64,000 nt of DNA from Orbicella franksi (GCA_964199315.1 OZ116712.1:4402001-4466000); one strand, 5' to 3'. Positions 33,064-57,659 are shown, counted from the first letter of the stretch. Notes: a model not told the origin generated them from the letters alone. Program-made: numbers and translations.

Positions 33064-33111
33064 GTGGCATTTGATTGGCTCCAAGCAGACAGTTATGACG
33101 TTAATTAATTC
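33064..33111 (+). promoter_or_regulatory. Conserved proximal promoter block, copy 5
   Basis: tttgattggctccaagcagacagttatgacgttaattaattc. Confidence 0.55.
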
Positions 33112-33188
33112 GGTTTTCTCGGAATCTAAAATAAAACCTTGATGCAGTTGTCTTTCGCAAGTTTCACTGAAACAAGCGATGCCTAGCG

Positions 33189-35399
33189 ATGGAGTCCCTT
33201 TTGAAAGACCTCAAGAAACATCTTGAATGCTCGATTTGTCTCGATACCTACAACCAACCCAAAACTATATCATGTCTACACACATTTTGCTGTCAGTGTT
33301 TGGAGAATCATGCAAGAGCCAGCCACAGACAAGGAAAGTTCCGTTGTCCACAGTGCCAAGCCCAAATCGATCTGCCCGAAGGAAATCGTTTCAAAAGTTT
33401 ACCGAGCAGTTTTTTCCACAACAGTTTGTTAAGTCTCCTTACCGTTCGACGGAGTGGCGATGGAAGTAACATGGCTTGTTCCCAATGTAGGAAAAACAAC
33501 TCTCTGATGTACTATTGCTTTGACTGTGGACGGTTTATGTGCCCAGACTGTTACAACGCACACGAAATGTTACGCGCATCGTTCGAAGGACACAAAGTCA
33601 CGCCAGTGAAGGAGTTTAAAGCAGAAGATTACGAAGCCTTGCTGAAGCGGCAACCATTTTGTTCACAGCAGTTCCACGAGAAAGAAATCACGAGATTCTT
33701 CTGTTTTTCGTGCCAAGCTTGTGTTTGCCAAATTTGCATAGTCACGGATCACCGAAATCACGACATCGTTTTACTCGACAAAGCAGCTCATGACGAGAAA
33801 CCCAACATCATGTCTGGCGCTGAAATGATCAACGAAAGGGTGAGCGAGCTTATTGAAGTGATTCGACAATTTGAAGAAACGGCTTCTAAGTTGGAAAACA
33901 ATGTCGCAACCGCTAAACGCGATGTCTCGCAAGCTGCTGGGCAGATGATCGAAGTGATTCGAGAGCGCGAACGTGAGGCGGTTATATTACTCGAGACAAC
34001 ACGCGTGACCAGACTCGAAAGAATTAACTCCGCCATCCAGCAAGTTCAGTCTCTGGTGAAACAAATGAAGCAAGCGGTTGAGTTTGCTAAAAATCTGACT
34101 GAAAGAAGCTCAAGCTCAGATATCATGAGTAACAAGGAAACTATGAAACAGCGATTTGAAGTGTTGCGTGAAATTGAAGTTCCAAAACATGACGAGACCT
34201 CATTCGTGACATTTACCGCTGCTTTTGCAAAGGACTTGAAATTAGGTTTTATTGAGACAATCCCAAAGGTCGCAGACGCAAGTCGATCAACGCTTGAAGG
34301 ACTGATGCAAGCTCTTCAGGCTGGTGTAGAAGCAAAGTTTACGTTATGCCTCACAACTTCTGAAGGGAAGATGAGTGACCAGCCTGATCTGAAAGATCAA
34401 GTTGACGTCCTGATTAAACCTGTTAAAGATGTTACAAATGTGACTGTTGTTGAGAAAGAGGACGATAATCTTCAGCTGAAATTTACTCCCAAAGTACCGG
34501 GCGCCTACAGCATTGAAGTGAAGATCAATGGCGATAAACTTCCAACCTGTCCTTTTACAGTGCAGGTGAAAGAACGCGAGCTTGATGTCGTTGGCGAGTT
34601 GGACTTAAAATTCTTTCCAGGAGACGAACCCGAATGGCTGCATGGAATCGCTGTTAACACAGAAGGCAAGATAGTTGTGACAGATGCCAATGGTCACTGT
34701 GTTTATGTATTCGATAGAGATGGCAACTGTTTAAGGAAAATTGGTTGCGAAGGAGAAAATCCTGGACAATTTAGCTACCCTGTGGGCGTTTCCTATGTAA
34801 ACAACAGTGAGATTCTAATTGCAGATCAATGTAATAATAGAATACAACACATAAATATTCAGACAGGAACTGTTGTGAAAAGCTTTGGAAAATGTGGTGC
34901 AGGAAAAGGAGAGTTTAAGAATCCGCTTGGCGTTTGTTTAGATGATGAAGGACGCATTGTTGTAACCGAGTGGGACAATCATAGGATACAAGTGTTGTCA
35001 CAGGAAGGAGAAACTATTTCCATACTTGGAGACAGAGGCCCAGAGAAACTCAAGAATCCATCAAGCTGCATTCCTTACAAAAACCTGTTTCTCATAGCTG
35101 ATGACGGCAATGACTGCATTAAGGTTTTCGATCAGTCAGGAACTTTCCTGTACAAGTTTGGAAAACAAGGGAGTCAAGATGGACAATTTGACTGGCCGTA
35201 TGGTATGCTTCTAGACAGCTCCAATAATCTTCTTGTATGTGATGAGAAGAATAACCGAGTTCAGCAGTTTTCTTTAGACGGTCGCTTCACAGGCAAAACT
35301 ATCACTGATTTACCAAGTCCTGCTGGAATAGCAACAGCATCAGATGGACGTATTCTCGTGACTAGCTCTGAAGCTAACAAACTATACACATTGAAGTAG
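33189..35399 (+). CDS. TRIM-NHL copy 5, 736 aa, intronless
   Basis: Complete ORF. It shares a one-codon insertion (KVADAS) with copy 8. Confidence 0.95.
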   Translation: MESLLKDLKKHLECSICLDTYNQPKTISCLHTFCCQCLENHARASHRQGKFRCPQCQAQIDLPEGNRFKSLPSSFFHNSLLSLLTVRRSGDGSNMACSQCRKNNSLMYYCFDCGRFMCPDCYNAHEMLRASFEGHKVTPVKEFKAEDYEALLKRQPFCSQQFHEKEITRFFCFSCQACVCQICIVTDHRNHDIVLLDKAAHDEKPNIMSGAEMINERVSELIEVIRQFEETASKLENNVATAKRDVSQAAGQMIEVIREREREAVILLETTRVTRLERINSAIQQVQSLVKQMKQAVEFAKNLTERSSSSDIMSNKETMKQRFEVLREIEVPKHDETSFVTFTAAFAKDLKLGFIETIPKVADASRSTLEGLMQALQAGVEAKFTLCLTTSEGKMSDQPDLKDQVDVLIKPVKDVTNVTVVEKEDDNLQLKFTPKVPGAYSIEVKINGDKLPTCPFTVQVKERELDVVGELDLKFFPGDEPEWLHGIAVNTEGKIVVTDANGHCVYVFDRDGNCLRKIGCEGENPGQFSYPVGVSYVNNSEILIADQCNNRIQHINIQTGTVVKSFGKCGAGKGEFKNPLGVCLDDEGRIVVTEWDNHRIQVLSQEGETISILGDRGPEKLKNPSSCIPYKNLFLIADDGNDCIKVFDQSGTFLYKFGKQGSQDGQFDWPYGMLLDSSNNLLVCDEKNNRVQQFSLDGRFTGKTITDLPSPAGIATASDGRILVTSSEANKLYTLK

Positions 35400-37127
35400 T
35401 TGTTTCAATAATCAGTAGTTTTCAGTTTGTACCGATACTGTGTTGAAATGCACGGTCTTTATGACGTCATGTTTATATAGTGTTACGTCCAATTTAGGAC
35501 TTTAGCTAATCTAGTCAAGTATTATGATGTAACGAATTAACATTGTAAAGTCGAAACCATTAAGTAAGCGTGTGGGACAAGCGGGTCTAAAAGATTTTTC
35601 GTTTTCAGTGAAGTGTCAAAGAAACTGTATACTTTTCTAATAGTCGAGGAAGTTTGTGAGCAGTAATTGAGGTTAATACTGTTTTCAGATACTGATTTGT
35701 TTTATAAAGATTGATTTTCACTACGACATAAGCAGAAGCATAAACATAATGGTAGGGAGGACGTCCACAACACAAGCATAAGCTCGTAAGCATGCGCAGA
35801 AAGGATAATTAGCTTATTTTCGATTCCATACCTCCTCGGTACAGTAAAACAAGATGGCGGACTTTTGATTATACTCATCCTTACAGCAGTGCGTTCTCAC
35901 TTCACAGAAGCATAAACACATAAAGGACAAAAGTTTTTGTTCTGCTTGTGCTTGTGTTGTGCGTGTCCCCACTTCCGTTGTGCTTGTGCTTGTTCTTATG
36001 TCGTAGTGAAAACCACGCTTAACAGGTTGTTTTTTTGTACATGTCAGCTTTGTTTTTGTAAGAACTGTTTAAAATAAGAAGGTTAACCCCTTAAATTAGC
36101 CGCCAAATTCTAAGAACATTGCGTACTAAGAACACACTCCAGGGTAATAGTGATTAGAAGAAGATTGTCATTTTCATGACTTTTTGAAAAAGCCCTATGA
36201 GGTCTGGTAAAATATAACACTAAAATTTAAATTACGTAAAATGATGCTGCAATAACTAAGTGCCGTTTAGGGAGATATTTGAACAAAAACCATAAGCTTG
36301 ACTCATTACATGGTTCACTGTAAAACAAGTTGGTAGTATTTTTTTTAGAACTATTGGAAATTTTAACATAAACTTCTAAAAACGTAAACAATTGGACACG
36401 GTATAACTTGTAAATCTGTTTGTAATGTTATGTAATTAGGATGTAAACGTAAAGCTAAGAACGTTCAGTCGCATGCAGTCTGAAATTTAGCGAAATTTGT
36501 GACCAAATTCATTGTTCGTTTGTGAGATAGCCGCCCTTGTCGAAAGAAAAATTCGCAATGTTGTCTCTCGGGAAGGGCGGGTGTAACACAGGCAAAATAA
36601 ATTTTTTGCAAATGTTAATGTCGTTGTAGAATGTTTATAGTGGTCGATGCGCTTAGCTACAGCTACCAAGTTCTCAGGCATGCCACTTTTAAAACTGAAA
36701 AAAAGACCATGTCAAAATATGCAAATTTGCAGCTTTAAACAGAGCTAACCATCCAGAGTGTTGTCATTGTTCTGCTTTCAGCTGAACTTAGTGCCAATTT
36801 GAATAAAATTTTGGGCTACCAAAATATTTTCCTGTAGTTTTGTCCTCATTTGAAGTTCGCAAAGTTGTGGGTGTGGTAGAATACATGTACGTGAAATTGC
36901 TTTCAATTTGCTTATTCCAGGTTGCATTTAATATGAGCTATAAGAATTTTTTATGATATCTCTCTGTTACTAAGTACGCTGTGATTGGTCAATTTAGTGG
37001 GGCCTACTCTACTGTGCGACTGGAATGGAGTGGTCCGCCAGTCACCGGGTCAAGAGTATATGTGCGCAAGACCGTGCGTAAGTGTTCATGGTATTGCCTG
37101 CGGGCAACAGAGAATCTTCTGTGTTAA

Positions 37128-38914
37128 AGTGCACCTAACCCCAAAAATGTTTTTTTCGCTAGAACGAATCTACTTATTATTTGAAATAGTTCTGCGAAAA
37201 AATTTTTTGAATTCCGTTAAATCCTCGATTTTCTGTGCCACGACGAAATCTCGAAAATAGCTCCAAAACACCGCCATTTTGTTTCACGACCGAGTTTGAG
37301 GAGAATGGGTCCAGCGGCTCTTGTGACGTCTACCCAGGAAGGTTGGATATCTCATTTCCTCTCATTTCCTTCAGGATGGTGCAATACACATTCGAAAAGT
37401 GCGCAGAAACGCCTTCCAGAGGTGCTATCGGCTGTTGCAGCAATATTCCAGATTTAAAGAAAGATATACTGTACAATTTACTGACGATGATCGGCTAATG
37501 GTGCAATAAAGACGTAAACGATGGTTGATTTTGTCGAACCGAAACAAGCGAACTGAATCTGTGAGAACCATTGAAGAACTCTCACTGGAATTTGTTCCGC
37601 AGACTTTCGAGCGCTATTTTCATAAATTTTCGGCTTAAAGCTAACCAGAAATTTGTAGAAATACTACCTACAACCTATATCTTCCAATCCCGCAGTATTT
37701 ATAACATAACCGGCAAAGTTGTGTGATCCGGTCATGATCAAGAAGCGTTATACTGATATGTAAATAGATCGCAACTGTACGCCGCTAACCAACACTTATT
37801 TCTCTTTCGATTTAGATGAAAGTCGAAGATTAATCCTCTAGAATTACATGATAACAAAATTGTTAGACTCACAGAGTTTTTCGAAGGTTTGGAAATCAGC
37901 AGTGCGACAAAGATTCTGTGCAATAGCGTCGAAAATATGACCGCGTAACATTATCTGCGGACCGCTTAGGGAACACATCCTTTTCGCTTATCCGACGAAT
38001 TTCACTGCAAACTTTGAGAACAATTTACATTGGTTATTTGGAGTTACGATTTAAAACGTGTGACAATGTGAAATCGGTAATTGTATGAAATGTTTCCTTC
38101 CGCCTTGCTTCCCGCAGCTTCAAAAATACAGGTCCAAACAATACGATTTTCAATCGATCGAAGCCAATGTTTTGGAGGTCATCAAGTCTCGAAAACTGCA
38201 ACACGTACGTCGCTCTTATAAACATGAAGCATTCAACTGAAAGTAAAGCACAAACTGGATTTAACAGAACCTTGACAAAATACATTCTCGGTAAGGACAA
38301 ATGTAAACGGGCTATAAACACGCGTGGGAATCTTATGTTTAGTTGACGAAATTACCATCCAAAGCAGTCCTTGAGTTTTCTTTCCTGCTTTTCGTTTGCC
38401 TGCTCCTCCACTTCGTATCTAGCTTTCCATTCCTAATATACAAGCAGCTCGTCCGCAAAGACGTCTTCCCCGTCGTCGCTTGAAATGTTGTAAATTGCTC
38501 TCAAAGCTCTAAGCAGTGAGTTCACAGTTGTCGAACGTGCTCGATCGAAGTTTATTTCGGAGCCTTCCGAATCGAAACTTAACTCTGACTCCAGTGACGA
38601 AAAAGAAATGATTCTGAGACAAAACTTGGACGTTTTAGTCCCAAAATACATCGGAACGATTAGTTTTGCGTTCTATTTTCTCGAGCAAATACAGAGAGTT
38701 GACTGAGGCGCTATTGTGTTTGGTTCCTGGGTAGACGTCATCAGGTACCGCCGCCCCAGACTCCCTAAAACGCGGTCGTGAAACACTTAATCGCGACTTT
38801 AAAAGGGCATAGAAAATCGAGGATTCAACCAAATTCAAAAGTTTCTTCGCCCAAATGCTTCAAATAAAGTCTAGATTTGTTTTAGCGAAAAAAAACTTGG
38901 GGGTTAGGTGCACT
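37128..38914. mobile_element. Kolobok-like non-autonomous DNA transposon, 1787 bp
   Basis: TTAA|agtgcacctaacccc...ggggttaggtgcact|TTAA. A TTAA TSD with purine-purine termini is the Kolobok signature. The empty site (gtgttaaggaaaaacg) is at ~6965-6980. Confidence 0.85.
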
Positions 38915-40325
38915 TTAAGGAAAAACGTTAACGTAGCATTGTGCTGGTTTGAATATAACCCAGCCAAATTGGTTTCTAGAGTAAACTTCTGTCCTGTCAG
39001 CTAAATTGGCGATTTAAAATTCGCCGCAATGGAGAACTTTAAAGTGTCTAATGTTTTTCTCTGTTTTCTTTTCAGGTAACAAAGGTTTCCAATCTTATTT
39101 TACGTTTCGCGCACTACTTCGTTACTGATGTGTGAAACAGGTTCGTTAGGTCTGAAGTCAGTATTACGCGTTGTCCCTCCAGACCAGTGGCATTGATATG
39201 CATATATGGAAAATCTGTAACCCAATGTGTGTCACGTTTAAACAAACAAACAAACAAACGAACCAACAAACTAGCAAACAAACCTTCCATGCCGGCTCCC
39301 TTTGATAAAGAAGAAAAGAAATGTAAAAGCCCATTAAGAAAATATTGCTCTGGAACCTCTATTTTCATACACCGTTTGAAAGACTCTGTTGTTGCTTATC
39401 TATTGTTTTGAGAACTAATTAGCTTCTGTTTAGATCGCAATGAATGTTATAGGTTGTTATACTGAGCCGCGCAAGGTCCATCTTTACATCAGTATTTGGA
39501 AAGGAAAAATACATCTTTTTTGTTTCATAAGAATCAGTGTTTTATAAGAATATTGAGGCTAAAATTCGCAACATTTTAAGAATGAGTTTAGAATGCTAAT
39601 ACAGAGACTTTCTTTAGAACAATTTTTTTTGTTTTTGATGGAAAATAAAATACAACAAAATACATGGTGTTTTTAATGATATTCATCTATTACTACGTGC
39701 GCTGTGATTGGTCAATTTAGTCCGTTAAACAATAAGAATATTCTGCCTGGGCATGAAAAATGTGAATTCTTAACTCTTACAAAGAATAAATAAATAAAAG
39801 AGTGCATTTGTTCCCCTTTCTTTACCTCGACCCTGGCCTCGTTTCTCCTTACTCTCCCCCCCCCCCCTCCCCCCGCCATTTTTTTACAATTAAGAAAAGT
39901 GTGGTCGATAGGTAATTCGTGTACTTTTTCCTTCTTCGCAAAAAGAAAATTACGAAACGTTTTTTCAAAAACTTGGTTTATTAATACATATGTACTAGAC
40001 TAGGCGAATGATTTGTGTGTAACTACTTCCTGGGTATGAAAAATATCTGTTCTTACAAAAAAGAGTGTTCATCCTTTCTAAGTTTTTTGACAATCTCTGA
40101 CAATCCCTAACGGTATGTTTTACTTTGTAGTGGTGCCCATATTCATCCGTTCAAGCCGATATAAATGTTGGCTGGCAAGGAGCGGGATATTGGCTTGGGA
40201 AAATACAATGACTCATTTCGCTGTATGGGGCAACCCGCGCCGAACATTCAGGCCGATAAATATTAGCTTGCGAAAGCGTACCAGCCCCTGTGCAGCCTGC
40301 ACTAACCACAAGCCAAGTCTTGATA

Positions 40326-41960
40326 CAGTGGAACCTCGATTTAACGAAGTCGCTGGGGACCGGCCAAATTTGTTCGTTAAATCGAGGGTTCGTTATATCG
40401 AAAACCTCGATATAATGAATTTAAGGGGAAACGACCAAAATGTTCGTTATATCGAGGTCATAGTTAATGATTGATTTATAACACAGGTGACTTCTGTCAC
40501 GTATTTCAATGCAATTTTCGTCACCCAGAAGTGTCGCGTTTTGAGATGCAATTCATGGTGCATGGTTCATGCATGGTGGCTTTCAGTATCAAATATTTTC
40601 ACTTTTGAGCAGGCGCGCAGCTTTTTTTTACAAACGAACGACACTTTCAGAGTAGCGATTTAAAAATGTTGCAACATAGAGGTTATGCAGAAAATTGTCT
40701 ATGTAAACAAGGAAACATTGTAATTCGTTATATCGAGGTAGATTTTACGTTTGGGCTTCCGGATTATGTTCGTTATATCGCGTAGGGGCCAAACCACCCC
40801 CCTAATGTTTCATGAAGGCTATATTGGCTTGGTTATATATTTCTGAACCAAGTTTGGCAGATGAGTTTTCTTTATTCTCCAGTTTATTTTAATTTAGAAG
40901 TTGTGACAAAACGTCAGATTATGACGTCACAATTGATGACGTCACCAAAACGTGCTATAATTTTTTGTAAAATCTGATGTAAAGATTATGTCATTGGAAA
41001 GGCCTTGACTTGAGGAGTAAAATGGCGAAAACCGTTTTTTGCTATGATGATTATTTTTTGAGATATGGTAAGTTAAATATTTTTTTGCTGTCCCCCCCCG
41101 GAATTTGCTTAACCATACTGTCGTTCTTAAGTCAGTCTCTCTGGTTTATTTTTTTCAGTTTTTTTCTAGGAAGGCTAATAATCTAGAAAAATAGAAAGCT
41201 TGATGTTGTCAAAAATCGTATGGTTTTAGAAATTTGATCTTGGGCTTTGTTAGGATGGTATTAACAGTAAAAAAATGGGTGACGTCACAGGTTATGACGT
41301 AACAAAACTAATTTTAACGCAATAACACTAGAGGGATAAATTTTTATTCCGATTTTCTTCTTTATTTTTGCTTTAGTCATCTGGCACATCACATGTGCAA
41401 CATAACTGCATTTGCTGGAACAACATTACGGCTCCAATTTGGGGATTTTTCTCAAGGGGGGGACCCCATATTTTGCAGAGTTATTTTTCATATTTAAAAA
41501 TGCCATATTTCATTTAATTTTTGTGATATGGACAAAAATTTTTCAGGTTTTGGCTCCCCTTGATGTGCTCTTTCCAACACATTTTAAAAAATATGCATTT
41601 TAAAAACTTCAAAAGTGACAAGAAACATGACGTCATCGCTGTGACGTCACAACTTTGACATTTACTGACATTTTTCACGTAAATATAATTGGCAATAGGT
41701 CTCCTGCTCATCTGCCAAGTTTGATGTAGAAAGAGTCAATACTTTTTAAGTAATGCGAAATAATGTGAAATATCCAAGAACTGACGAAACATTTGGGGGG
41801 TGGTTTGGCCCCTACATGTCGAAGAATTCGTTATATAGAGGTTCGTTACATCGAGGTTCTATTCCATACATTTTACAGTAACTTTGGCCGGGACATAGAA
41901 TATCGTTCGTTATATCGAGGACTTCGTTAAATAGAGGTTCGTTAAATCGAGGTTCCACTG
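40326..41960. mobile_element. Tc1/mariner (Tigger-like) MITE, ~600 bp, interrupted by a nested element
   Basis: TA|cagtggaacctcgatttaacgaa...ttcgttaaatcgaggttccactg|TA with many ttcgttatatcgagg repeats. Empty sites (cttgatatgttaac) are upstream of copies 2 and 9. Confidence 0.9.
40783..41814. mobile_element. 1032-bp nested non-autonomous DNA transposon with TAGGGGCCAAACCACCCC TIRs
   Basis: taggggccaaaccacccccctaatgtttc...gaaacatttggggggtggtttggccccta. The flanks tatatcgcg and catgtcgaa may be a degraded 9-bp TSD. Confidence 0.8.
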
Positions 41961-42327
41961 TATGTTAACTTGCGTGAGCATATATAGTAACTTCCGTTAT
42001 CGACACCTGAATAATAACTTTTTAAAGCTTAAACGAAATTAAGAAGCTGGATTTTAGCGATGAATGCAAACAAACATGAAATTAAGCATAGCGTGTTAAG
42101 CGAAGCTAACACGAAAGGAGGCATAAAATCCACTCGAAAACCCAACTAAAGCCCAATCTTCCCATCTATCGGATCTAAACAAGTGCCCAGTCAATTAGTA
42201 GAATTGACTGCGATCACTTGACTCTCGTAAACCGACAAACTTCTGATTAGCTGCCAACTTGTTGTGCGCTTCGCGCACACAACAAACTCTAGCGCGATTT
42301 GCATTTAACCTAGACATAACTATTTTT

Positions 42328-42372
42328 GTGACATTTGATTAGCTCCAAACAGACAGTTATGACGTTAATTAT
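42328..42372 (+). promoter_or_regulatory. Proximal promoter block of copy 6 (CCAAT box mutated ATTGG to ATTAG)
   Basis: gtgacatttgattagctccaaacagacagttatgacgttaatta. Confidence 0.5.
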
Positions 42373-42451
42373 TTCGCTTTTCTCGAAAACTAAAGTAAAA
42401 CCTTGCGGCAGGTGTGTTTCGCAAGCTTCCCTAAACAGGCGACGCCTAGCG

Positions 42452-44659
42452 ATGGAGTCCCTTTTGAAAGACCTCAAGAAACATCTTGAATGTTCCATTT
42501 GTCTCGATACCTTCAACGAACCCAAAACTTTATCATGTCTACACACGTTTTGCTGTCAGTGTTTGGAGAATCATGCAAGAGCCAGCCACAAACAAGGAAA
42601 GTTCCGTTGTCCACAGTGCCAAGCGCAAATCGATCTACCCGAAGGAAATCGTTTCCAAAGTTTACCGAGCAGTTTTTTCCACAACAGTTTGTTGAGTCTC
42701 CTTGCCGTTCGTCGGGGTGGCGATGGAAGTAACATGGCTTGTTCCCAATGTAAGAAAAACAACTCTCAGATGTACTATTGCTTTGACTGTGGACGGTTTA
42801 TGTGCCCAGACTGTTACAACGCACACGAAATGCTGCGTGAGTTGTTTGAAGGACATAAAGTTACGTCAGTGAAGGAGTTTAAAGCAGAAGATTACGAAGC
42901 CTTGCTGAAGCGACAACCATTTTGTTCACAGCAGTTCCACGAGAGAGAAATCACGAGATTCTTCTGTTTTTCGTGCCAAGCTTGTGTTTGCCAAATTTGC
43001 ATAGTCACGGATCACAGAAATCACGACATCGTTTTACTCGACAAAACAGCTCATGACGAGAAACCCAACATCATGTCTGGCGCTGAAATGATCAACGAAA
43101 GGGTGAACGAGCTTATTGAAGTGATTCGGCAATTTGAAGAAACGGCTTCTAAGTTGGAAAACAATATCGCAACCGCTAAACGCGAAGTCTCGCAAGCTGC
43201 TGGGCAGATGATCGAAGTGATTCGAGAGCGCGAGCGTGATGCGATTTTATCACTCGAGACAACACGCGTGACGAGACTCGAGACAATTAACTCCGCCATC
43301 CAGGAAGCTCAGTCTCTGCTCAAACAAATGAAGCAAGCGGTTGAGTTTGCTAAAAATCTGACAGAAAGAAGCTCAAGCTCGGATATCATGAGGAACAAGG
43401 AAACTTTGAAACAGCGATTTGAAGTGTTGCGTGAAATTGAAGTTCCAAAACATGATGAGACCTCATTTGTCAAATTTACCGCTGCTTCTACAAAGAACTT
43501 GAAATTAGGTTCTATTGAGACAATCCCAAAGGCAGACGCAAAGCGATCAACGCTTGAAGGACTAAAGCAAACTCTTCAGGCTGGTGTAGAAGCAGTGTTT
43601 ACGTTATACCCCCAAACATCTGAAGGGACGATGATTAAGCAGCCTGACCTGAAAGATCACATTGAAGTTCTGATTGAACCCGCCAAAGATGTTACAAATG
43701 TGACTCTTAGTGAGAAAGAGGACGGTAATGTTCAGCTGAAATTTACTCCAAAAGTACCGGGCGACTACAGTATTGAAATGAAGATCAATGGCGATAGGCT
43801 TCCAACCTGTCCTTTCACAGTGCAAGTGAAAGAACGTGAACTCGTTGTCGTTGGCGAGTTGGACTTAAAATTCTTTCTAGGAGATGAACCCGAATGGCTG
43901 TATGGAATCGCTGTTAATTCAGAAGGCAAGATAGTTGTGACAGATGACTCTGGTGACTGTGTGTACGAGTTCGACAGAGATGGTAACTGTTTAACGAAAC
44001 GTGGTAGCGAAGGAGCAAATCCCGGACAATTTAGCTATGCGTCTGGCGTTTCCTATGTAAACAAGAACGAGATTCTAATTGCAGATCAAGGGAATCATAG
44101 AATACAACACATAAATATTCAGACAGGAACTGTTGTTAAAAGCTTTGGAAAACATGGCTTAGGAAAAGGAGAGTTTAAGGATCCAGTTGATGTTTGTTTA
44201 GATGATGAAGGACGCATTGTTGTAACCGAGTCCGGCAATCATAGGATACAAGTGTTGTCACAGAAAGGAAAAACTATTTCCATATTTGGAGACAGAGGCT
44301 CAGAGAAACTCAACAAACCAACAAGCTGCATTCCTTACAAAAACATGTTTCTCGTATCTGGCAGAGGCAATAACTGTATTAAGGTTTTCGATCAGTCAGG
44401 AACTTTCTTGTACAAGTTTGGAAAAGAAGGAAATCAAGATGGACAATTTGACTGTCCGGATGGTATGCTTCTAGACAGCTCCAATAATCTTCTTGTATGT
44501 GATAGTGACAATGACCGAGTTCAGCAGTTTTCTTTAGACGGTCACTTCACAGGCAAAACTATCGCTCATTTACCACGTCCTTCTGGAATAGCAACAGCGC
44601 CAGATGGACGTATTCTCGTGACTAGCTTTGAAGCTAACAAACTATACATATTGAAGTAG
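42452..44659 (+). CDS. TRIM-NHL copy 6, 735 aa, chimera (copy-2-type 5' end, copy-3-type 3' part)
   Basis: Complete ORF from the ATG at 42452. The 5' flank and RING match copy 2; the C-terminus and 3' flank are near-identical to copy 3. Confidence 0.95.
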   Translation: MESLLKDLKKHLECSICLDTFNEPKTLSCLHTFCCQCLENHARASHKQGKFRCPQCQAQIDLPEGNRFQSLPSSFFHNSLLSLLAVRRGGDGSNMACSQCKKNNSQMYYCFDCGRFMCPDCYNAHEMLRELFEGHKVTSVKEFKAEDYEALLKRQPFCSQQFHEREITRFFCFSCQACVCQICIVTDHRNHDIVLLDKTAHDEKPNIMSGAEMINERVNELIEVIRQFEETASKLENNIATAKREVSQAAGQMIEVIRERERDAILSLETTRVTRLETINSAIQEAQSLLKQMKQAVEFAKNLTERSSSSDIMRNKETLKQRFEVLREIEVPKHDETSFVKFTAASTKNLKLGSIETIPKADAKRSTLEGLKQTLQAGVEAVFTLYPQTSEGTMIKQPDLKDHIEVLIEPAKDVTNVTLSEKEDGNVQLKFTPKVPGDYSIEMKINGDRLPTCPFTVQVKERELVVVGELDLKFFLGDEPEWLYGIAVNSEGKIVVTDDSGDCVYEFDRDGNCLTKRGSEGANPGQFSYASGVSYVNKNEILIADQGNHRIQHINIQTGTVVKSFGKHGLGKGEFKDPVDVCLDDEGRIVVTESGNHRIQVLSQKGKTISIFGDRGSEKLNKPTSCIPYKNMFLVSGRGNNCIKVFDQSGTFLYKFGKEGNQDGQFDCPDGMLLDSSNNLLVCDSDNDRVQQFSLDGHFTGKTIAHLPRPSGIATAPDGRILVTSFEANKLYILK

Positions 44660-47571: not shown

Positions 47572-48738
47572 TCGCGGTATGAGTTCAAACTACGAAATCA
47601 CTGACAAAAAACAGGCAGTCAATGACGGTATGTGGCTACTGCTGTCATTATTTAGAACATTGCAGTAAAACAAATCATATTGCAATAAAACGAGCTAACT
47701 ACGAAAACGTTTTTGGACTCATAGCTCGTAAAAACATTCGACTTGTTTCTTGCACCGCGCAAAATATCTCGATCCCTAAAGTTGTAAAGACAGACTTTCG
47801 GTAACTTGAATCAAATGTCTTCTCCAAGTTTAGTTGGCTTTCTAGTAGGGTGCAGGAAAAAAAAATTAACGTGTGACTTTGGAGACAAATTGTGCGAGAA
47901 AATTAAACCTTCGATTGTGCGGGGAATTGTGCGGAATTATTGACGAACCAATGTCCTTGCCAAGTCCTCAGGAAAATTTGCATTGACGATAGTTTAGCCA
48001 GTTATTTCACTAGTAGTTCAAATATATTCAGAAGTCTTAGCAATCGCCAATTCTTTTAGAAAACTGTGTCTGAATAGCAAAACAGAATGCCGCATCTTCC
48101 CTTATAAATGAGTTCCTTTTTAAAAGTTCTCCTGCCTTGATTCAATAAAAATATGTAGCTTGAATATTTCTCATAAACTGCGATAAGGGTCGCAAATTCT
48201 CGGAAGTTATCCGCAAAAAACATAACTTGAATGTTTATGCAAATTAAGTGCAATGCAATTTGCGCCTTGTCCTAGGAGTGTTGTTTTCGCGAAGGAGCTT
48301 ATCTATTCGCCCTCCAAAGGAGACGAGACTCTTCAAAAGGGTTTAAGATCGCAACACGGCAAAGATGTTCAGCTGCACAATTCACTCGGATCGCCACGAC
48401 CAGTAAACGAACTTCGCACAATTTCTGCTAGCATGTTCAATGTAATCGCCACTGATAAGTTGTAAAAAGACCTGGAAAATTCTTTGCAAACAAGTTCTCC
48501 ATAAATGCGTAGACAGCTGTGCTTTCTTGAACCAAAGTGGTTTAAACTCAGAACTTGCGATTGGATTCATAGGAGGATACTCAACGAAACAACTTGAATA
48601 GTAAATATCTAAGCGGAACTCTTGTGCCAAAATATCCTGATTCTTTAATTTGTTTTTATTGTGTCCAATACGCGTTTTCGTACAGTACGATTTAATACTG
48701 CGGTACGAAGCCCGAGTAAACGCTCTTAGAACGTCTAG
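47572..48738 (+). mobile_element. Possible non-autonomous Helitron-like insertion (~1.17 kb)
   Basis: Unique block bounded by A|TC... and ...CTAG|T. The 3' hairpin is weak, and the flanks imply an associated deletion. Confidence 0.35.
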
Positions 48739-49923
48739 TTTAATGCATCAGTTGTGCTCATCAGGATTCGATGTGTTCTGAAGTAATTTTCAGTATAGCT
48801 TTTTGTCTTATCTGGCACGAAACGGCACCGGAAAAGACTGATTGTACTTGCCGCCTGACTGCATAGCAGAAGGTGGTGGGGCGACAGTTAGCCCCACCAT
48901 CCCAAGCTTCGTTTTCTTTGCTCTCGCTCCAACTTGCGCGCGGTCCAGTTGTGGAAAGAGCTCTAGCTAGTACGGGAACGTTTGCTACGCAGAGTCGAGT
49001 ACGTTTAGGATGTGATAACCTGCTTTTCTAGGTGTAAACTTTCACAAGGGGGAGAGTTGGGGTAGGAATTTGTACTGCTCTGAATGAACAAATGAGAAAC
49101 GCGTAGACTTGAGAAAAACTGAAATTTTGAGACTTAAGAAACCTCCTTGTTTTTTTACGTTTTTCATTATTCTCTGACGTTGTTACTCCATGACATCATC
49201 TTTATATAGTGTTATGCCCAAATTACGATTTGTAATCTAGTAGTTACTAAGGTGGTTAGATCGAGTTTTTGAGTAGCAAAACAACTTAGAGGTCTTTCAG
49301 CGACCAGCGATAACTACAATGTTGTAAAGAATTTTAACATAAGATAGCACCGCGAGAGAAAAATCCTTTGTTAAAAACGCAATAAACGCTTTGGGTTGTC
49401 ACGGCTGATTAAGATCCTCAAGGTTACTTCTACTTCTACTTCTTCCTCAAAGGAGCTACGTCACTTCGTTTGTAATCCGTGTCAATCTCCATCCTCAACC
49501 ATCCTTGTTCCTTTACGGTTTATTATTATCTCGTTGGTGTTTTTCTATCTTAGTACCGAACTATTTTCAAGTTTCCTTCAAATTAAAGTTAATGTTGTAC
49601 TTAAGAATGATTTTCGCCTGCCTTAGAGTATATAGTCTAGGCACGAAAAATATAAATTCTTACAAGTAAAGTGTGTATTGGCCAACATTTTACTACCACT
49701 TCATGACACTTCGGATTAAAAGTGGCGATATTTTCTGGGGGGAGGCTTTGTCTCTTTCTTTCTTTCTTTTGCGTAGACCGTCTGTGACGTAAATGAAAAA
49801 TACGACAAGCATTTCCGATTTATCAACTACTTAGAGCCTCTTTACTGACCCCTGGCTTCCTAAATTTATCGATGCAAACGCTCAAAAGACCAACTAAGGT
49901 TTCACTCAGACGTCAATAATTTT

Positions 49924-49970
49924 GTGACATTTGATTGGCTCCTTGCAGACAGTTATGACGTTAATTAATT
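49924..49970 (+). promoter_or_regulatory. Conserved proximal promoter block, copy 7
   Basis: gtgacatttgattggctccttgcagacagttatgacgttaattaatt. Confidence 0.55.
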
Positions 49971-50035
49971 AGGTTTTCTAGGAAAACTAAACATAAAAGC
50001 TTGGTGCAGTTTCACTGAACAAGCGACGCCTAGCG

Positions 50036-52242
50036 ATGGAGTCCCTTTTGAAAGACCTCAAGAAACATCTTGAATGCTCCATTTGTCTCCAAACCTACAG
50101 CAAACCCAAAACCATATCATGTCTACACACATTTTGCTGTCAGTGTTTGGAGAATCATGCAAGAGCCAGCCACAGACAAGGAAAGTTCCGTTGTCCAGAG
50201 TGTCAAGCGCAAATCGATCTGCCCGAAGGAAATCGTTTCAAGAGTTTACCGAGCAGTTTTTTCCACAACAGTTTGTTGAACCTTCTTGTCGTTCGACGGA
50301 GTGGCGATGGAAGTAACATGGCTTGTTCCCAATGTAGGAAAAACAACCCTCAGATGTACTATTGCTTTGACTGTGGACGGTTTATGTGCCCAGACTGTTA
50401 CAACGCACACGAAATGCTAAGCGCATCGTTCGAAGGACATAAACTCACGTCAGTGAAGGAGTTTAAAGCAGAAGATTACGAAGCCTTGCTGAAGCGACAA
50501 CCATTTTGTTCACAGCAGTTGCACGAGAGAGAAATCACCAGATTTTTCTGTTTTTCATGCCAAACTTGTGTTTGCCAAATTTGCATAGTCACGGATCACA
50601 GAAATCACGACATCGTTTTACTCGACAAAGCAGCTCATGACGAGAAACCCAACATCATGTGTGGCTTTCAAATGATCAACGAAAGGGTGAGCGAGCTTTG
50701 TGAAGTGATTCGGCAATTTGAAGAAACGGCTTCTAAGTTAGAAAACAATATCGCAACCGCTAAACGCGAAGTCTCGCAAGCTGCTGGGCAGATGATCGAA
50801 GTGATTCGAGAGCGCGAGCGTGATGCGATTATATCACTCGAGACAACACGCGTGACGAGACTCGAGACAATTAACTCCGCCATCCAGGAAGCTCAGTCTC
50901 TGCTCAAACAAATGAAGCAAGCGGTTGAGTTTGCTAAAAATCTGACAGAAAGAAGCTCAAGCTCGGATATCATGAGGAACAAGGAAACTTTGAAACAGCG
51001 ATTTGAAGTGTTGCGTGAAATTGAAGTTCCAAAACATGATGAGACCTCATTTGTCAAATTTACCGCTGCTTCTACAAAGAACTTGAAATTAGGTTTTATT
51101 GAGACAATCCCAAAGGCAGACGCAAAGCGATCAACGCTTGAAGGATAAAGCAAACTCTTCAGGCTGGTGTAGAAGCAGTGTTTACGTTATACCCCCAAAC
51201 ATCTGAAGGGACGATGATTAAGCAGCCTGACCTGAAAGATCACATTGAAGTTCTGATTGAACCCGCTAAAGATGTTACAAATGTGATTGTTGTTGAGAAA
51301 GAGGACGGTAATCTTCAGCTGAAATTTACTCCCAAAGTACCGGGCGACTACAGCATTAAAGTAAAGATAAATGGCGAAAAGCTTCCAACCTGTCCTTTCA
51401 CAGTGCAGGTGAAAGAACGTGAACTCGTTGTCGTTGGTGAGTTGGACTTAAAATTCTTTCCAGGAGATGAACCCGGATGGCTTGATGGAATCGCTGTTAA
51501 CTCAGAAGGGAAGATAGTTGTGACAGATGAGTTTGGCCACTGTGTTTACGAGTTCGACAGAGATGGTAACTGTTTAAGGAAACGTGGTAGCAAAGGAGCA
51601 AATCCCGGACAATTTAGCTATGCGTCTGGCGTTTCCTATGTAAACAAGAACGAGATTCTAGTTGCAGATCAAATGAATCATAGAATACAACACATAAATA
51701 TTCAGACAGGAACTGTTCTGAAAAGATTTGGAAAACATGGCTCAGGAAAAGGAGAGTTTGAGAATCCAGTTGACGTTTGTTTAGATGATGAAAGACGCAT
51801 TGTTGTAACCGAGTACGGCAATCATAAGATACAAGTGTTGTCACAGAAAGGAAAAACTATTTCCATACTTGGAGACAGAGGCCCAGAGAAACTCAACAAC
51901 CCAACTAGCTGCATTCCTTACAAAAACATGTTTCTCGTATCTCATAGGGGCAATAACTGTATTAAAGTTTTCAATCAGTCAGGAACTTTCTTGTACAAGT
52001 TTGGTAAAGAAGGAAATCAAGATGGACAATTTGACTGGCCATATGATATGCTTCTAGACAGCTCCAATAATCTTCTTGTATGTGATCATTACAATAACCG
52101 AGTTCAGCAGTTTTCTTTAGACGGTCGCTTCACAGGCAAAACTATCACTGATTTACCAGGTCCCTTTGGAATAGCAACAGCGCCAGATGGACGTATTCTC
52201 GTGACTAGCGCCACAACTAACAAAGTATACATATTGAAGTAG
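50036..52242 (+). pseudogene. TRIM-NHL copy 7, frameshifted (1-bp deletion at ~51146; ORFs 50036-51148 and 51178-52242)
   Basis: gaaggataaagc versus gaaggactaaagc in copy 6. The span is 2207 bp, one less than 2208. A sequencing error is not excluded. Confidence 0.8.
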
Positions 52243-55200
52243 TTGTTTCAATAATCAGTAGTTGTCAGTTTGTACCGTCGGAACCTGTGTTGGAATGCAC
52301 GGTCTCTCTGACGTCATGCTCAGGTAGCGTTTTTGGAAATTACCATGTGAACTAATCTACTCAAGTATTATGATGGAAAGACTTTAACATTTCAAAGACG
52401 AAATTGCAAGGGGAGCAAGTCTCAAAGATGTCTCGTTTTCAGTGTAGTGTTTTAAAGAAGCTTAACACTTTTCTAACATTCGAGGAGGTTTAGGAGCAAA
52501 ACCAATCCATAATCATGCTTTCCCGGGGGAGGTGGGGAAGGGGGAAAATGTGCACTGCTCTGGATTGACAGGTGGGAAATGCGCAAAGTTGGCGTTAAAA
52601 TCTGAACTTTCAAAACGTAACAAAAACCAAAACCAGAGTTGCCCTCATCAATTTGGTTAGTATAGACGTAGAATAACGCTACAAATTAGGGTTACATGTA
52701 ATACTGTTTTGAAACATTGATTTGCTTTATAACCCCTTATACTTTGTACATTTCGGCTTTGTTTTTGTGAACCCTGGAGTCGTCTGAAAATCATTGGGTA
52801 GGGGTGTGCAGCTGGGACACCGAAACCTTTACCCTCTGCCTTTACCCTATACTAGAGCTTGATCAGTTTGATTTTGCAACGCATTAATGCACCAAAAGCC
52901 CCTAATCGTAGTCCAATACAGGATAAGTAATATCTTACAAAGTCACTTACGACTTTCAATTTCTATTATAGAACCCCGGGTAAAGAACCCTGCTCTAGAC
53001 TAAATTATATATACAGTATACTAGCCACTTTCCCGGGAAATTATAGCCTTTTCAAGACAACTGTCTGATTTCTATGTTGAAAACAAAAGATATGACAGGC
53101 CAACACGGACTCCCCTCGTGAATTGCGATAGCGATGCATTTTAGCCTTCAATTAAATTTTCACTCTAACGAGCGTATCTTTTAGAGATTTGTCTCTCTTA
53201 TATGATATAATCGGAGGTTTAGTCTAGATGCTTTTCCGTTAGTATCGTTTTGTTTGTCCTCCGCCATGTGTTCTTCGGTGTCCGTTGGAGGACAGTAAGA
53301 AGGTGTTTTGGGGGCTCTGTAATCGACATCCTCGTCACCAGATGTACTTGGTCCGAGATATAGCAGTAATTCGTTGTCTGACATCATAGTTGCTTCAGCA
53401 GGACCGCTCGGTTTCGATTCTTCACGAATCTCTTTGTTTGAGGCGTGACAACTTTAAATTAAATGCTACTTAGGGAAAGTTAGAGACGTTTCTCAATTCC
53501 GTTCCCCCTCCAATAGTTGTTTGGTGATCTTTTTATATCAGGATAGTCTGGTGCTGGGATCGAAGTGTTAGCTTTCCCATTGGTCCTCCCCGAAGCGAGA
53601 GGGCCAATGAGGTGCAAGGGATTTTCGATCGGTAGAGCGAGAAGCTAGAGTGTGTTTCTTTGTAAGGCTAAACTGCCTGAAAACCATACCCTTCACAGCG
53701 GCACATACCCATATAGCTTGTCTGATGGGAGTACCCCCTATGGGGAGGGGAGGGGGGCTAAGAACACACCCGAAGCTTTAAGTCACTAAAAGAAGATTGT
53801 TTTCTAAACTCGACTTAAACTTAAACAATTGGAAATGGTCTATTAAACTTATAAATGTAATTTCAATGTTGTGTAGTAAGCCGTAATTGTTCGCAAATGT
53901 ATGGCTTTGAACAGAGCTGAACATATCAACAAGAGTGCTAGTTTGAATAAAATTTTGGGCCCTCAAAGCACTTTGCCTATAATTTTTATCTCTGTTTTGA
54001 AATTCGTAAACTGGTGGGATTCTTGCAATTCATAAACGTGAAGCTACTTTTAATTTGCTTGTTCCGGGTTGCATTTGATATGACCTACCGTAAACTGCCG
54101 CTTATAAGTCTCCCCCCCCCCGCCCCCCCTTGGTTGTAGGCCTATCTACCTTTAAACCAGAAAATACACCCGGTTATAAGCCCCCCCTGATATAAGCCCC
54201 CTAGCTTTCCTTGTGTTGAATTTGTTTTATTATGTTTTAACGCTTAATTACCAGTAAATGAAAAATCTATTTCCTTAGTTTTTGTTTCGATTAAGAAGAT
54301 ATATCAAACACTCGAGACAGTGTTTCATCGGCCAAACACCTCGAATTGCGTCAAAAATACTCCAGTGAGCGTGGTATTTTCAACTCTCTTCTCGGTGTTC
54401 GGATATCCCGATGAAACACTGTCTCTCGTGTTTATATATATTACTTCATAAAATATCATTATATACATGGAACGAAAGTAATGTAGAAAGGCCGTTAATG
54501 TCTCTGGTCCCATGTTGAAAACACTACCTCGGTCTATTGTTGTTAAGGGCCAGGGCTATTGTTATGACTTCTCATCTATTGTTTCATATTGAGAACCAAG
54601 ATAACACCGCGAGAGAAATTTTCTTTGTTCAAAGCACAATGAATGCTGTAGGTTTTCAAAGCTGATTTAGATCCTTGGTTATTTCTAATTCCCACCCATT
54701 GTTTACAATTAAAAAGGATCGTGAAAATGTATTTTAAGTTCTTTTTCCATCATCTTAAAAAGTAGGTCTATTACATCCCGTATGAACGAGATTACACGCG
54801 TGTCACAAGACATATTATAAAATAACAGGGCTACTACGTGCGCTATCATTGGTCGATAGGTGTGTTTAGATGAGAATATGTAAACACTGTTGTGACACGT
54901 ATTTTTTAAGAATAATTTTCTCAAATCAATACCGTACTTTTTCGATGTTTACATAGCCTCAAATTCTCCAAAGGTAGCAAACCCGAGACGTTCGAATTCT
55001 CTCAACCCCCCTCGTGTTAAATTAGGCTATGTAAACACTTAGAAAAAGCTCTAACCTTAGATTGGCCACCATGGTGTTTGCTTTTTCCCTTTTTACAACC
55101 GCTTCATGACACATCGTATTAAAAGTGGCCACATCTTTGGGGGGAGTGTTTGCCTGTTTGTTTGTTTCTTTAATTTTGGGTAGACTGTGCGGTAAATGAA

Positions 55201-55324
55201 AACTACGACAAACATTTCCGATTTTTTAATTCCTTAGAGCCTCTTTACTGACCCCTGGCTTCATATCATCGATGCAAATCGCTCAGAAGACCACCTGAGA
55301 ACACTCTCAGACGTCAATAATTTT

Positions 55325-55372
55325 GTGGCATTTGATTGGCTCCAAGCAGACAGTTATGACGTTAATTAATTC
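55325..55372 (+). promoter_or_regulatory. Conserved proximal promoter block, copy 8
   Basis: tttgattggctccaagcagacagttatgacgttaattaattc. Confidence 0.55.
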
Positions 55373-55448
55373 GCTTTTCTCGGAATCTAAAATAAAACCT
55401 TGATGCAGTTGTCTTTCGCAAGCTTCACTAAACAAGCGATGCCTAGCG

Positions 55449-57659
55449 ATGGAGTCCCTTTTGAAAGACCTCAAGAAACATCTGGAATGCTCGATTTGTC
55501 TCGATACCTACAACCAACCCAAAACTATATCATGTCTACACACATTTTGCTGTCAGTGTTTGGAGAATCATGCAAGAGCCAGCCACAGACAAGGAAAGTT
55601 CCGTTGTCCAGAGTGTCAAGCGCAAATCGATCTGCCCGAAGGAAATCGATTCAAAAGTTTACCGAGCAGTTTTTTCCACAACAGTTTGTTAAGTCTCCTT
55701 ACCGTTCGACGGACTGGCGACGGAAGTAACATGGCTTGTTCCCAATGTAGGAAAAACAACTCTCTGATGTACTATTGCTTTGACTGTGGACGGTTTATGT
55801 GCCCAGACTGTTACAACGCACACGAAATGTTACGCGCATCGTTCGAAGGACACAAAGTCACGCCAGTGAAGGAGTTTAAAGCAGAAGATTACGAAGCCTT
55901 GCTGAAGCGGCAACCATTTTGTTCACAGCAGTTCCACGAGAAAGAAATCACGAGATTCTTCTGTTTTTCGTGCCAAGCTTGTGTTTGCCAAATTTGCATA
56001 GTCACGGATCACCGAAATCACGACATCGTTTTACTCGACAAAGCAGCTCATGACGAGAAACCCAACATCATGTCTGGCGCTGAAATGATCAACGAAAGGG
56101 TGAACGAGCTTATTGAAGTGATTCGACAATTTGAAGAAACGGCTTCTAAGTTGGAAAACAATATCGCAACCGCTAAACGCGAGGTCTCTCAAGCTGCTGG
56201 GCAGATGATCGAAGTGATTCGAGAGCGCGAACGTGAGGCGGTTATATTACTCGAGACAACACGCGTGACCAGACTCAAAAGAATTAACTCCGCCATCCAG
56301 CAAGTTCAGTCTCTGGTGAAACAAATGAAGCAAGCGGTTGAGTTTGCTAAAAATCTGACCGAAAGAAGCTCAAGCTCAGATATCATGAGTAACAAGGAAA
56401 CTATGAAACAGCGATTTGAAGTGTTGCGTGAAATTGAAGTTCCAAAACATGATGAGACCTCATTCGTGAAATTTACCGCTGCTTTTGCAAAGGACTTGAA
56501 ATTAGGTTTTATTGAGACAATCCCGAAGGTCGCAGACGCAAGTCGATCAACTCTTGAAGGACTGATGCAAGCTCTTCAGGCTGGTGTAGAAGCAAAGTTT
56601 ACGTTATGCCTCAAAACTTCTGAAGAGAAGATGAGTAACCAGCCTGATCTGAAAGATCAAGTTGACGTTCTGATTGAACCCGTTAAAGATGTTACAAATG
56701 TGATTGTTGTTGAGAAAGAGGACGGTAATCTTCAGCTGAAATGTACTGCCAAGGTACCGGGCGCTTACAGTATTGAAGTGAAGATCAATGGCGATAAACT
56801 TCCTACCTGTCCTTTTTATGTGCAGGTAAAAGAACGTGAACTTGTTGTCGTTGGCGAGTTGGACTTAAAATTCTTCCCAGCAGACGTGCCTCAAGGGTTG
56901 TGTGGAATCGCTGTTAACACAGAAGGCAAGATAGTTGTGACAGATGAGAGTGGCCACTCTGTTTATGTATTCGATAGAGATGGCAACTGTTTAAGGAAAA
57001 TTGGTTGCGAAGGAGAAAATCCTGGACAATTTAGGAGCCCAGCGGGCGTTTCCTATGTAAACGACAACGAGATTCTAATTGCAGATCAAGAGAATCATAG
57101 AATACAACACATAAACATCCAGACAGGAACTGTTGTGAAAAGCTTTGGAAAACTTGGTGCAGGAAAAGGAGAGTTTAAGAATCCAGTTGACGTTTGCATA
57201 GATAATGAAGGACGCATTGTTGTAACCGAGTACGGCAATCATAGGATACAAGTGTTGTCACAGGAAGGAGAAACTATTTCGATATTTGGAGACAGAGACC
57301 CAGAGAAACTCAAGGAACCATCAAGCTGCATTCCTTACAAAAACCTGCTTCTCATAGCTGATGACGACAATGACTGCATTAAGGTTTTCGATCAGTCAGG
57401 AACTTTCCTGTTCAAGTTTGGAAAACAAGGGAATCAAGATGGACAACTTGACTGGCCGTATGGTATGCTTCTAGACAGCTCCAATAATCTTCTTGTATGT
57501 GATTATTACAATAACCGAGTTCAGCAGTTTTCTTTAGACGGTCGCTTCACAGGCAAAACTATCACTGATTTACCAAGTCCTACTGGAATAGCAACAGCGC
57601 CAGATGGACGTATTCTCGTGACTAGCTCTGAAGCTAACAAAGTATACACATTGAAGTAG
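55449..57659 (+). CDS. TRIM-NHL copy 8, 736 aa, intronless
   Basis: Complete ORF; sister of copy 5. Confidence 0.95.
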   Translation: MESLLKDLKKHLECSICLDTYNQPKTISCLHTFCCQCLENHARASHRQGKFRCPECQAQIDLPEGNRFKSLPSSFFHNSLLSLLTVRRTGDGSNMACSQCRKNNSLMYYCFDCGRFMCPDCYNAHEMLRASFEGHKVTPVKEFKAEDYEALLKRQPFCSQQFHEKEITRFFCFSCQACVCQICIVTDHRNHDIVLLDKAAHDEKPNIMSGAEMINERVNELIEVIRQFEETASKLENNIATAKREVSQAAGQMIEVIREREREAVILLETTRVTRLKRINSAIQQVQSLVKQMKQAVEFAKNLTERSSSSDIMSNKETMKQRFEVLREIEVPKHDETSFVKFTAAFAKDLKLGFIETIPKVADASRSTLEGLMQALQAGVEAKFTLCLKTSEEKMSNQPDLKDQVDVLIEPVKDVTNVIVVEKEDGNLQLKCTAKVPGAYSIEVKINGDKLPTCPFYVQVKERELVVVGELDLKFFPADVPQGLCGIAVNTEGKIVVTDESGHSVYVFDRDGNCLRKIGCEGENPGQFRSPAGVSYVNDNEILIADQENHRIQHINIQTGTVVKSFGKLGAGKGEFKNPVDVCIDNEGRIVVTEYGNHRIQVLSQEGETISIFGDRDPEKLKEPSSCIPYKNLLLIADDDNDCIKVFDQSGTFLFKFGKQGNQDGQLDWPYGMLLDSSNNLLVCDYYNNRVQQFSLDGRFTGKTITDLPSPTGIATAPDGRILVTSSEANKVYTLK

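Follow-up and report, generated by a model that had tools for sequence, protein, structure and literature searches.

In a 64,000-nucleotide stretch of the Orbicella franksi assembly (GCA_964199315.1 OZ116712.1; C15:4402001-4466000), called the window here, open reading frame (ORF) calls revealed nine intronless genes of about 735 codons each, all on the same strand. Two of them, c5 (33189-35399) and c8 (55449-57659), both on the plus strand, differ much more in their filamin and NHL parts than in their front halves or in their flanks. The analysis indicates that both genes are probably mosaics, in which exchange with paralogs was the main cause of the divergence and family-wide selection on the upper face of the NHL propeller acted in addition. 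The original prediction for this DNA had described a steep increase in divergence from the N to the C terminus between the two copies, and had attributed it to selection or to the import of NHL tracts by conversion.

Based on its ORF, Pfam matches and an AlphaFold2 (AF2) model, c5 is an intact intronless TRIM-NHL gene encoding 736 amino acids. Its sister c8 is likewise intact and of the same length, as judged from the ORF and a gapless comparison with c5. The RBCC region extends over 33189-34268 in c5 and 55449-56528 in c8, the filamin domain plus linker over 34269-34598 and 56529-56858, and the NHL propeller over 34599-35396 and 56859-57656. The alignment runs without gaps across 2211 nt and contains 96 nucleotide and 52 amino-acid differences. 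The amino-acid differences are distributed as 7/360 in the RBCC, 10/110 in filamin plus linker and 35/266 in the NHL, which reproduced exactly the earlier manual counts of about 7, 10 and 35. At the nucleotide level, divergence was 1.48% in the RBCC, 6.67% in filamin and 7.27% in the NHL. As a neutral yardstick we used the unique flanks of the two segmental duplicates that carry c5 (31542-40325, plus strand) and c8 (53817-62418, plus strand), delimited by self-BLAST, sliding divergence and regional counts. These flanks differ at 44 of 4945 sites (0.89%), equally upstream (about 1 kb) and downstream (about 4 kb), in line with the claim that they are near-identical. Filamin divergence was 7.5-fold (P = 1e-12) and NHL divergence 8.2-fold (P = 1e-32) above this background, but RBCC divergence only 1.7-fold (P = 0.04). 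Thus the gradient is real, is far above chance and survived proper alignment.

Divergence is also raised outside the coding sequence (CDS). An upstream non-coding patch (32601-32920, plus strand; counterpart about 54876-55181) is 7.8% diverged between c5 and c8. Here c8 deviates, while c5, c1 and a third sister copy, c11, agree. The 208 nt following the stop codon (35400-35607, plus strand) are homologous to other copies and 4.3% diverged, which is 4.9 times the background. Over all non-coding patches homologous to other copies, divergence was 4.9 to 8.8 times background. For a downstream patch at 39701-40020, comparison with a third copy served only to polarise the changes. As a side observation, the c8 upstream patch contains at 54860-55050 a dispersed repeat of about 100-190 nt with dozens of copies on many contigs. 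These copies are about 76-79% identical, some are inverted, and they have the look of miniature inverted-repeat transposable elements.

Synonymous (dS) and non-synonymous (dN) divergence was calculated by the Nei-Gojobori method (NG86), by region and in sliding windows. The RBCC gave a dS of 0.042 and a dN of 0.008 (dN/dS, omega, 0.19), filamin 0.157 and 0.046 (omega 0.29) and the NHL 0.085 and 0.074 (omega 0.88). All regional dS values exceeded the flank divergence of 0.009. Filamin and NHL taken together had a dS of 0.106, corresponding to 24.5 synonymous changes where about 2.5 were expected at the flank rate. In the sliding windows dS peaked at about 0.30 in codons 421-510 (34449-34718, plus strand), which cover the end of filamin, the linker and NHL blade 1, and was about 0.02 in codons 601-736. 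The gradient is therefore not a simple signal of selection, because synonymous and non-coding divergence climb as well and selection at the protein level cannot cause those. The sliding dS and dN comparison that had been suggested as a check thus favoured conversion over pure positive selection. The values of 0.02 and 0.30 within the 3' half further mean that genealogical depth is heterogeneous along the gene, and the earlier premise of an equal divergence time did not hold. As a practical caution, dN/dS of apparent sister copies in such arrays is not readable as selection before the alignment has been partitioned for recombination.

Positive selection on new NHL point mutations after one clean duplication, with no import, was considered as an alternative. 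It would fit the contrast between the NHL and RBCC omega values, the concentration of differences on the upper-face loops, about 15 derived states that are unique in the genome, and the composition of codons 601-736, where about 16 non-synonymous changes (dN about 0.055) meet 2 synonymous ones with dS at background. However, the surplus of synonymous changes and the equally raised non-coding patches largely refute it. The omega gradient, moreover, is family-wide: within the array clade omega rises from 0.28 in the RBCC to 0.49 in filamin and 0.79 in the NHL, and since c5 and c8 mirror this series, their own gradient is not evidence specific to the pair. Shared synonymous states and multi-nucleotide codon differences, described below, also speak against selection as the only cause, and we regard it as unlikely.

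Import was examined against paralogs from the whole assembly (497 Mb). Besides the window copies, 28 additional paralogs were retrieved for comparison (L numbers below denote such copies), and the assembly search gave at least 45 NHL matches genome-wide. The array extends past the window in both directions, from 4.33 to 4.50 Mb, with more clusters elsewhere on C15 and on C12. At 79 of the 96 differences between c5 and c8 the minority, or derived, base was found in another paralog, against 61.8 expected from random mutation at the same columns (p = 5e-5). Among synonymous differences this was the case at 22 sites against 14.8 expected on the same basis (p = 4.5e-4). A copying-mosaic model of the Li-Stephens type reached a log-likelihood of -905, compared with -943 +/- 9 for a null of 150 data sets in which the derived bases had been randomised at the same positions (z = 4.2). 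None of the 150 simulations reached -905. This final run left out c1 and scored gaps as mismatches. A first Viterbi mosaic had been discarded, as cheap gaps let the model exploit the c1 deletion. The pairwise homoplasy index (PHI) test on the array copies gave p = 0.002 in the RBCC, in filamin plus NHL, in the NHL alone and in the whole gene.

Candidate donors were sought by triplet scans. A GENECONV-style pairwise fragment test had been swamped by the higher RBCC conservation and was uninformative for short NHL tracts. In the scans c8 resembled L015/L017 at CDS nt 1371-1453, c2 at nt 1619-1787 and c9 at nt 1593-1648, and c5 resembled L013/L014 at nt 1588-1756. The candidate donor c2 lies at 9175-11382 on the plus strand, and c8 resembles it at nt 1619-1815. 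The copy c9 (62900-64000, plus strand, running off the window) adjoins c8 and is the candidate donor for c8 nt 1592-1642. The nearest relative of c5 and c8 within the window is c1 (3412-5190, plus strand), which has an internal NHL deletion and may be either a donor or an outgroup. Twelve codons differ between c5 and c8 at two or three nucleotides, and for 6 of the 12 both codons occur in other paralogs. For instance, TGT at c5 codon 548, a three-nucleotide difference, is also present in L013/L014, and TAT TAC at c8 codons 686-687 in L026. Inside the NHL, runs free of differences (nt 1455-1498 and 1512-1586) alternate with dense patches. A putative micro-conversion from c6 to c5 at nt 163-174 was dropped, as c11 shares only part of it. 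Contiguous donor matches have statistical support, but the donors are composite and several tracts have no donor in the assembly. Taken together with dS and the non-coding patches, the shared derived states and the copying model lead us to favour gene conversion and unequal crossover among paralogs as the source of most of the excess divergence, so that the import named in the original prediction is likely its main cause. Separately, we observed that nt 1844-2200 of c5 and c8 (35032-35388 and 57292-57648) stand out by their similarity to a clade that is otherwise distant, L024-L030 at C15:5.5-5.67 Mb. This similarity reflects either strong conservation or an old exchange between clusters.

The relation of the pair to a third sister bears on its history. 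This copy, c11, is located at C15:4477567, just outside the window, and in the 5' part it resembles c5 more closely than c8 does. The copies c11 and c5 are near-identical from 2.2 kb upstream as far as CDS nt 1464 and 10-14% different beyond that point. The breakpoint (34642-34653, plus strand; CDS nt 1454-1465) lies at the filamin/NHL junction and marks the right end of a duplication that is very recent and about 9.4 kb long. This duplication relates window positions 25223-34650 to C15:4469600-4479027 with about 99.8% identity, includes the whole of c4 and ends inside c5. Hence c11 is a chimera in which a different propeller follows the front half of c5. That c5 and c8 arose in one duplication is consequently too simple: with c11 there are three sisters, and the array is pieced together from segmental duplications of differing age. 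Within the recent duplicate, we observed that the coding DNA of c5 and c11 at 33221-34420 is about 1.0% different, compared with about 0.12% in the rest (about 8 times). This excess includes several unique single-base changes. Between c4 and its twin L008, only 2 of 2208 sites in the gene bodies are different.

Other close pairs were compared in the same way. In L010-L012, c3-L010 and c3-L012 the proportion of synonymous differences was 0.000-0.013 in RBCC plus filamin and 0.058-0.068 in the NHL, and the pairs c6-c3 and L019-L020 had the reverse gradient. Because close pairs display opposite gradients and c11 is chimeric, the parts of these genes have different genealogies, and for this reason, too, an equal divergence time along the gene fails. 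One could then suppose that the NHL halves of c5 and c8 are old and never were sisters, and that flanks and RBCC were recently homogenised by long conversion or crossover while selection for diversity spared the NHL. The several pairs with an identical RBCC and a diverged NHL, and c11 with its whole 5' module copied onto another NHL, are in agreement with such a history. However, the equal divergence of 0.89% on both flanks would require two separate long events bracketing the NHL. In addition, identical stretches alternate with dense patches, the last 136 codons are at background dS, and c5 and c8 are still each other's closest NHL. Old, never-sister NHL halves are therefore improbable.

We analyzed the predicted proteins with Pfam, structure prediction and fold comparison. 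The window copies share a RING, two B-boxes, a coiled coil, a filamin domain and six NHL repeats. The RING was detected at residues 14-56 (Pfam zf-RING_UBOX and zf-C3HC4), a B-box at 155-195 (Pfam B-box) and an ANCHR-like B-box at 97-137. Residues 14-340 can be aligned to the RBCC of TIF1-beta and TRIM25 chains, and the coiled-coil assignment rests on that alignment. The filamin domain precedes the NHL at 362-457 (Pfam, E = 7e-12). The AF2 model of the c5 NHL is a six-bladed propeller of 24 strands with a predicted local distance difference test (pLDDT) score of 95.3. Its top Foldseek matches are the NHL domains of Thin, TRIM2, TRIM71 and Lin41 (E = 1e-24 to 1e-21), on which it superposes with template modelling (TM) scores of 0.85-0.90 at 27-32% identity. 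Among named proteins, the nearest are coral entries called 'TRIM45-like' and 'TRIM71', from Oculina patagonica (77-79%) and Pocillopora (66%). By sequence and modelled fold the array proteins belong to the class VII TRIM-NHL proteins, and the gene product is a predicted TRIM-NHL ubiquitin ligase.

Using structural classes defined solely from the strand map of the AF2 model, we calculated pairwise omega among the array copies. B-C loops had an omega of 1.70, D-A loops 0.89, strands 0.51 and bottom loops 0.45-0.55. Parsimony counting with a Poisson test identified 16 codons whose dN exceeds the mean synonymous rate at a false discovery rate below 0.1. D-A or B-C loops contain 12 of these codons, the other 4 fall on the initial residues of strand A, and the bottom loops contain none. 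A per-site binomial test of the SLAC (single-likelihood ancestor counting) type had been powerless, as the neutral expectation is already mostly non-synonymous, and was replaced by the Poisson and structural-class tests. The amino-acid differences between c5 and c8 are enriched at the fast codons (9/16, odds ratio 11, p = 3e-5). The two copies differ in five of their six B-C loops and have no change in the C-D bottom loops. The RNA-binding 'upper' surface of Lin41 is opposite the filamin domain (PMC5908797), and the first strand past the filamin linker completes blade 6 as the outer strand. Based on this chain topology, together with the position of the Lin41 RNA surface, the D-A and B-C loops should lie on the upper face. 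Omega above 1 is thus clustered at the putative upper face next to a conserved RBCC, and family-wide diversifying selection on this face sets where amino-acid change accumulates. Selection therefore probably shapes which patches are imported or kept. For the second cause named in the original prediction this means that selection acts family-wide on the NHL upper-face loops, whereas the c5/c8 pair alone does not demonstrate it.

The same data bear on relaxed constraint, in which redundancy would let one copy or both decay, most rapidly in the NHL. An NHL omega near 1, c8 changes at normally conserved residues (C504S, G617D, F634L and Y655F) and the pseudogenes c1 and c7 in the array could be taken to suggest such decay. 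Against it, both ORFs are intact and c8-type sequence occurs in polyA RNA-seq contigs. Of 131 columns conserved in other corals, c5 deviates at 6 and c8 at 8, compared with 6-10 in other window copies. Relaxation also cannot lift dS or non-coding divergence, and the changes cluster on the upper-face loops and spare the C-D bottom loops. We consider decay of redundant copies very unlikely.

Several observations weigh against the combination of paralog exchange and upper-face selection. No single donor accounts for most tracts. The search for donors of short variable tracts, which had been proposed as a check, found none within 3 mismatches elsewhere in the assembly for the example tract of c8, a 27-mer at 56877-56903. 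Codons 686-687 of c5 are without counterpart in the assembly, and for the c8 upstream patch no donor in the assembly is better than c5/c11 at 89%. Polarising the changes by the majority state introduces noise, and no significance was reached in a runs test asking which copy carries the minority state (40 runs against 40.7 expected; p = 0.10 after collapsing by codon). The evidence for selected sites comes from parsimony with NG86 on an alignment that has recombined, with a single tree for the site test, and the upper face was assigned by topological inference rather than from coordinates. Finally, in codons 601-736 selection on point mutations may contribute, where the numbers cannot separate an omega of 2 from the family value of about 0.8.

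The example tract was analyzed further. Its c5 version (34617-34643, plus strand) is typical of the family, and 8 sites in the genome match it with at most 3 mismatches. The c8 version (plus strand, 27 nt) carries 10 changes, 3 of them synonymous, and is unique in the assembly. Its codons individually match those of the L013-L017 clade, although no one copy has all of them. Such findings could in principle result from an assembly or polishing artefact, in which reads of paralogs were blended into the consensus of a repetitive array and created false mosaics. The array indeed consists of 88-99% identical repeats, and the unique single-base differences scattered in the coding DNA of c5 and c11, at about 8 times the flank rate, would be in line with this. 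In contrast, an RNA-seq contig covering 56847-57074 (228 nt) has the c8 sequence with 0 mismatches, spans the example tract and includes about 27 sites diagnostic for c5 or c8. Two independent DNA contigs (56847-56932 and 56903-57062) are c8-specific with 0 mismatches as well, and c5 NHL words are present in runs from 11 studies. The c8 tract is real, because independent DNA and RNA contigs contain it, and for the mosaics as a whole an artefact is highly improbable.

Two further observations were made in the public runs. At 56903, contigs from two runs, one of DNA and one of RNA, connect the family-type version of the tract to c8-type sequence downstream. These may represent a c8 allele without the unusual tract, or chimeras of a de Bruijn graph, the latter because the 44-nt stretch shared by c5 and c8 exceeds the assembler word length (assumed to be about 31 nt). 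Further, the runs that best cover the c5 NHL (34330-35500) and those that best cover the c8 NHL (56500-57800) are different sets with different organism labels, which hints at presence/absence or copy-number variation of the two genes among individuals or close species. For the tracts without donor, the simplest reading is that the donors have disappeared or that only other haplotypes of an array that varies in copy number carry them. Alternatively, multi-nucleotide mutation acting locally may have produced these tracts.

Combining these results, we propose the following course for exchange with paralogs. The two genes are young tandem duplicates, about 0.9% apart in their unique flanks, within a large intronless coral TRIM-NHL array. 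After the duplication, short filamin-NHL patches and gene-proximal non-coding DNA were most likely overwritten by non-allelic gene conversion or unequal recombination, with other family members as donors, some of them missing from the assembly. Such import brought in standing paralog variation at synonymous, non-synonymous and non-coding sites and raised divergence 5- to 9-fold in filamin, the NHL and the non-coding patches homologous to other copies. The front half changed little, presumably in part as paralogs are more alike there and in part as fewer exchanges occurred or were kept. Variation in the family has probably in turn been shaped by diversifying selection on the D-A and B-C loops, on the face that binds RNA in LIN-41 and Brat, and imported patches that alter the upper face are probably the ones retained. 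Import and selection on this face together would produce the N-to-C rise in both divergence and dN/dS.

A more far-reaching possibility is that the array acts as a germline generator of recognition specificities, in which B-C and D-A loops are rewritten by very short templated exchanges or by targeted multi-nucleotide mutation. The exchange pool would then be a large and partly haplotype-specific set of paralogs. This would explain why five of six B-C loops differ despite flanks only 0.9% apart, the replacements without donor (the c8 27-mer and c5 codons 686-687) and the recurrent breakpoints at the filamin/NHL junction. We regard such a generator as a speculative and rather unlikely extension of paralog exchange.

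The domain architecture and the NHL fold are the same as in class VII TRIM-NHL proteins such as TRIM71/LIN-41, TRIM2, TRIM3, Thin (TRIM32) and Brat. Those relatives are conserved low-copy developmental regulators. The coral genes, in contrast, are intronless, occur in tandem arrays with pseudogenes and have hypervariable upper-face loops (B-C omega 1.7). In their mode of evolution they are more reminiscent of the TRIM5alpha/TRIM22 cluster of mammals and the finTRIM/bloodthirsty arrays of fish, which have reportedly been described in this respect. In both, a conserved RBCC effector is joined to a recognition domain at the C terminus, diversifying selection acts on the surface loops of that domain, and the genes turn over by birth and death in tandem arrays, with sequence exchange among paralogs. 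The variable domain is a B30.2/SPRY in TRIM5 and finTRIM and a filamin-NHL in the coral array. The antiviral role of TRIM5 is established, and the likeness of the coral array to it lies in sequence evolution. A second parallel exists with plant NLR resistance-gene clusters, which are said to contain chimeric 'type I' genes. Here too, frequent exchange yields mosaics, exposed residues of the repeat domain are hypervariable next to a conserved signalling module, and chimeras form by unequal crossover, as in c11. Plant NLRs, however, are unrelated NB-ARC-LRR proteins with experimentally known pathogen recognition.

At the level of single genes, c5 and c8 illustrate how propellers that are patch-edited from paralogs recombine with a constant, putative E3-ligase module. 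The likely binding face of the propeller evolves fastest, so that by analogy the logic of TRIM5/finTRIM and of plant NLRs may have been built on a cnidarian NHL propeller. Corals retain many clustered tandem duplicates, with immune-type families prominent, and gene conversion was described as 'very rare' in their tandem arrays (Noel et al. 2023; PMC10236652). The TRIM-NHL array displays clear recombination or conversion and therefore qualifies this statement. The single lead towards a role in immunity or non-self recognition is a report that symbionts induce a scleractinian NHL-domain gene whose Ka/Ks is above 1 (PMC7783167), a gene that may or may not belong to the array family. In the literature searched, we found no paper on hypervariable TRIM-NHL arrays.

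The remaining copies of the window are all on the plus strand. An intronless copy, c3, starts at 20506. The paralog c6 (42452-44659) adjoins c5 and is 96.5% identical to the c3 unit across 5.2 kb in self-BLAST. In c1, the internal deletion removes roughly the first three NHL blades and the reading frame terminates early. The copy c7 (50036-52242) has a premature stop at 51146-51148, downstream of which its 3' half is otherwise intact. Both c1 and c7 are probably pseudogenes of the array. The start codon of c4 (27461) and of its twin L008 is GTG, compared with ATG in all other copies, so these two may use an alternative start codon or may be untranslated. Upstream of c2 (9058-9174) and c6 (42335-42451) an in-frame extension of 39 codons from a TTG is common to both, which is probably an open 5' leader and not coding. 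Finally, compared with the c8 unit, the c5 unit has an insertion of about 1.6 kb (40326-41960) where the high-identity duplicate stops. Past this insertion, the identity between c6 and c9 is only about 92-95%.

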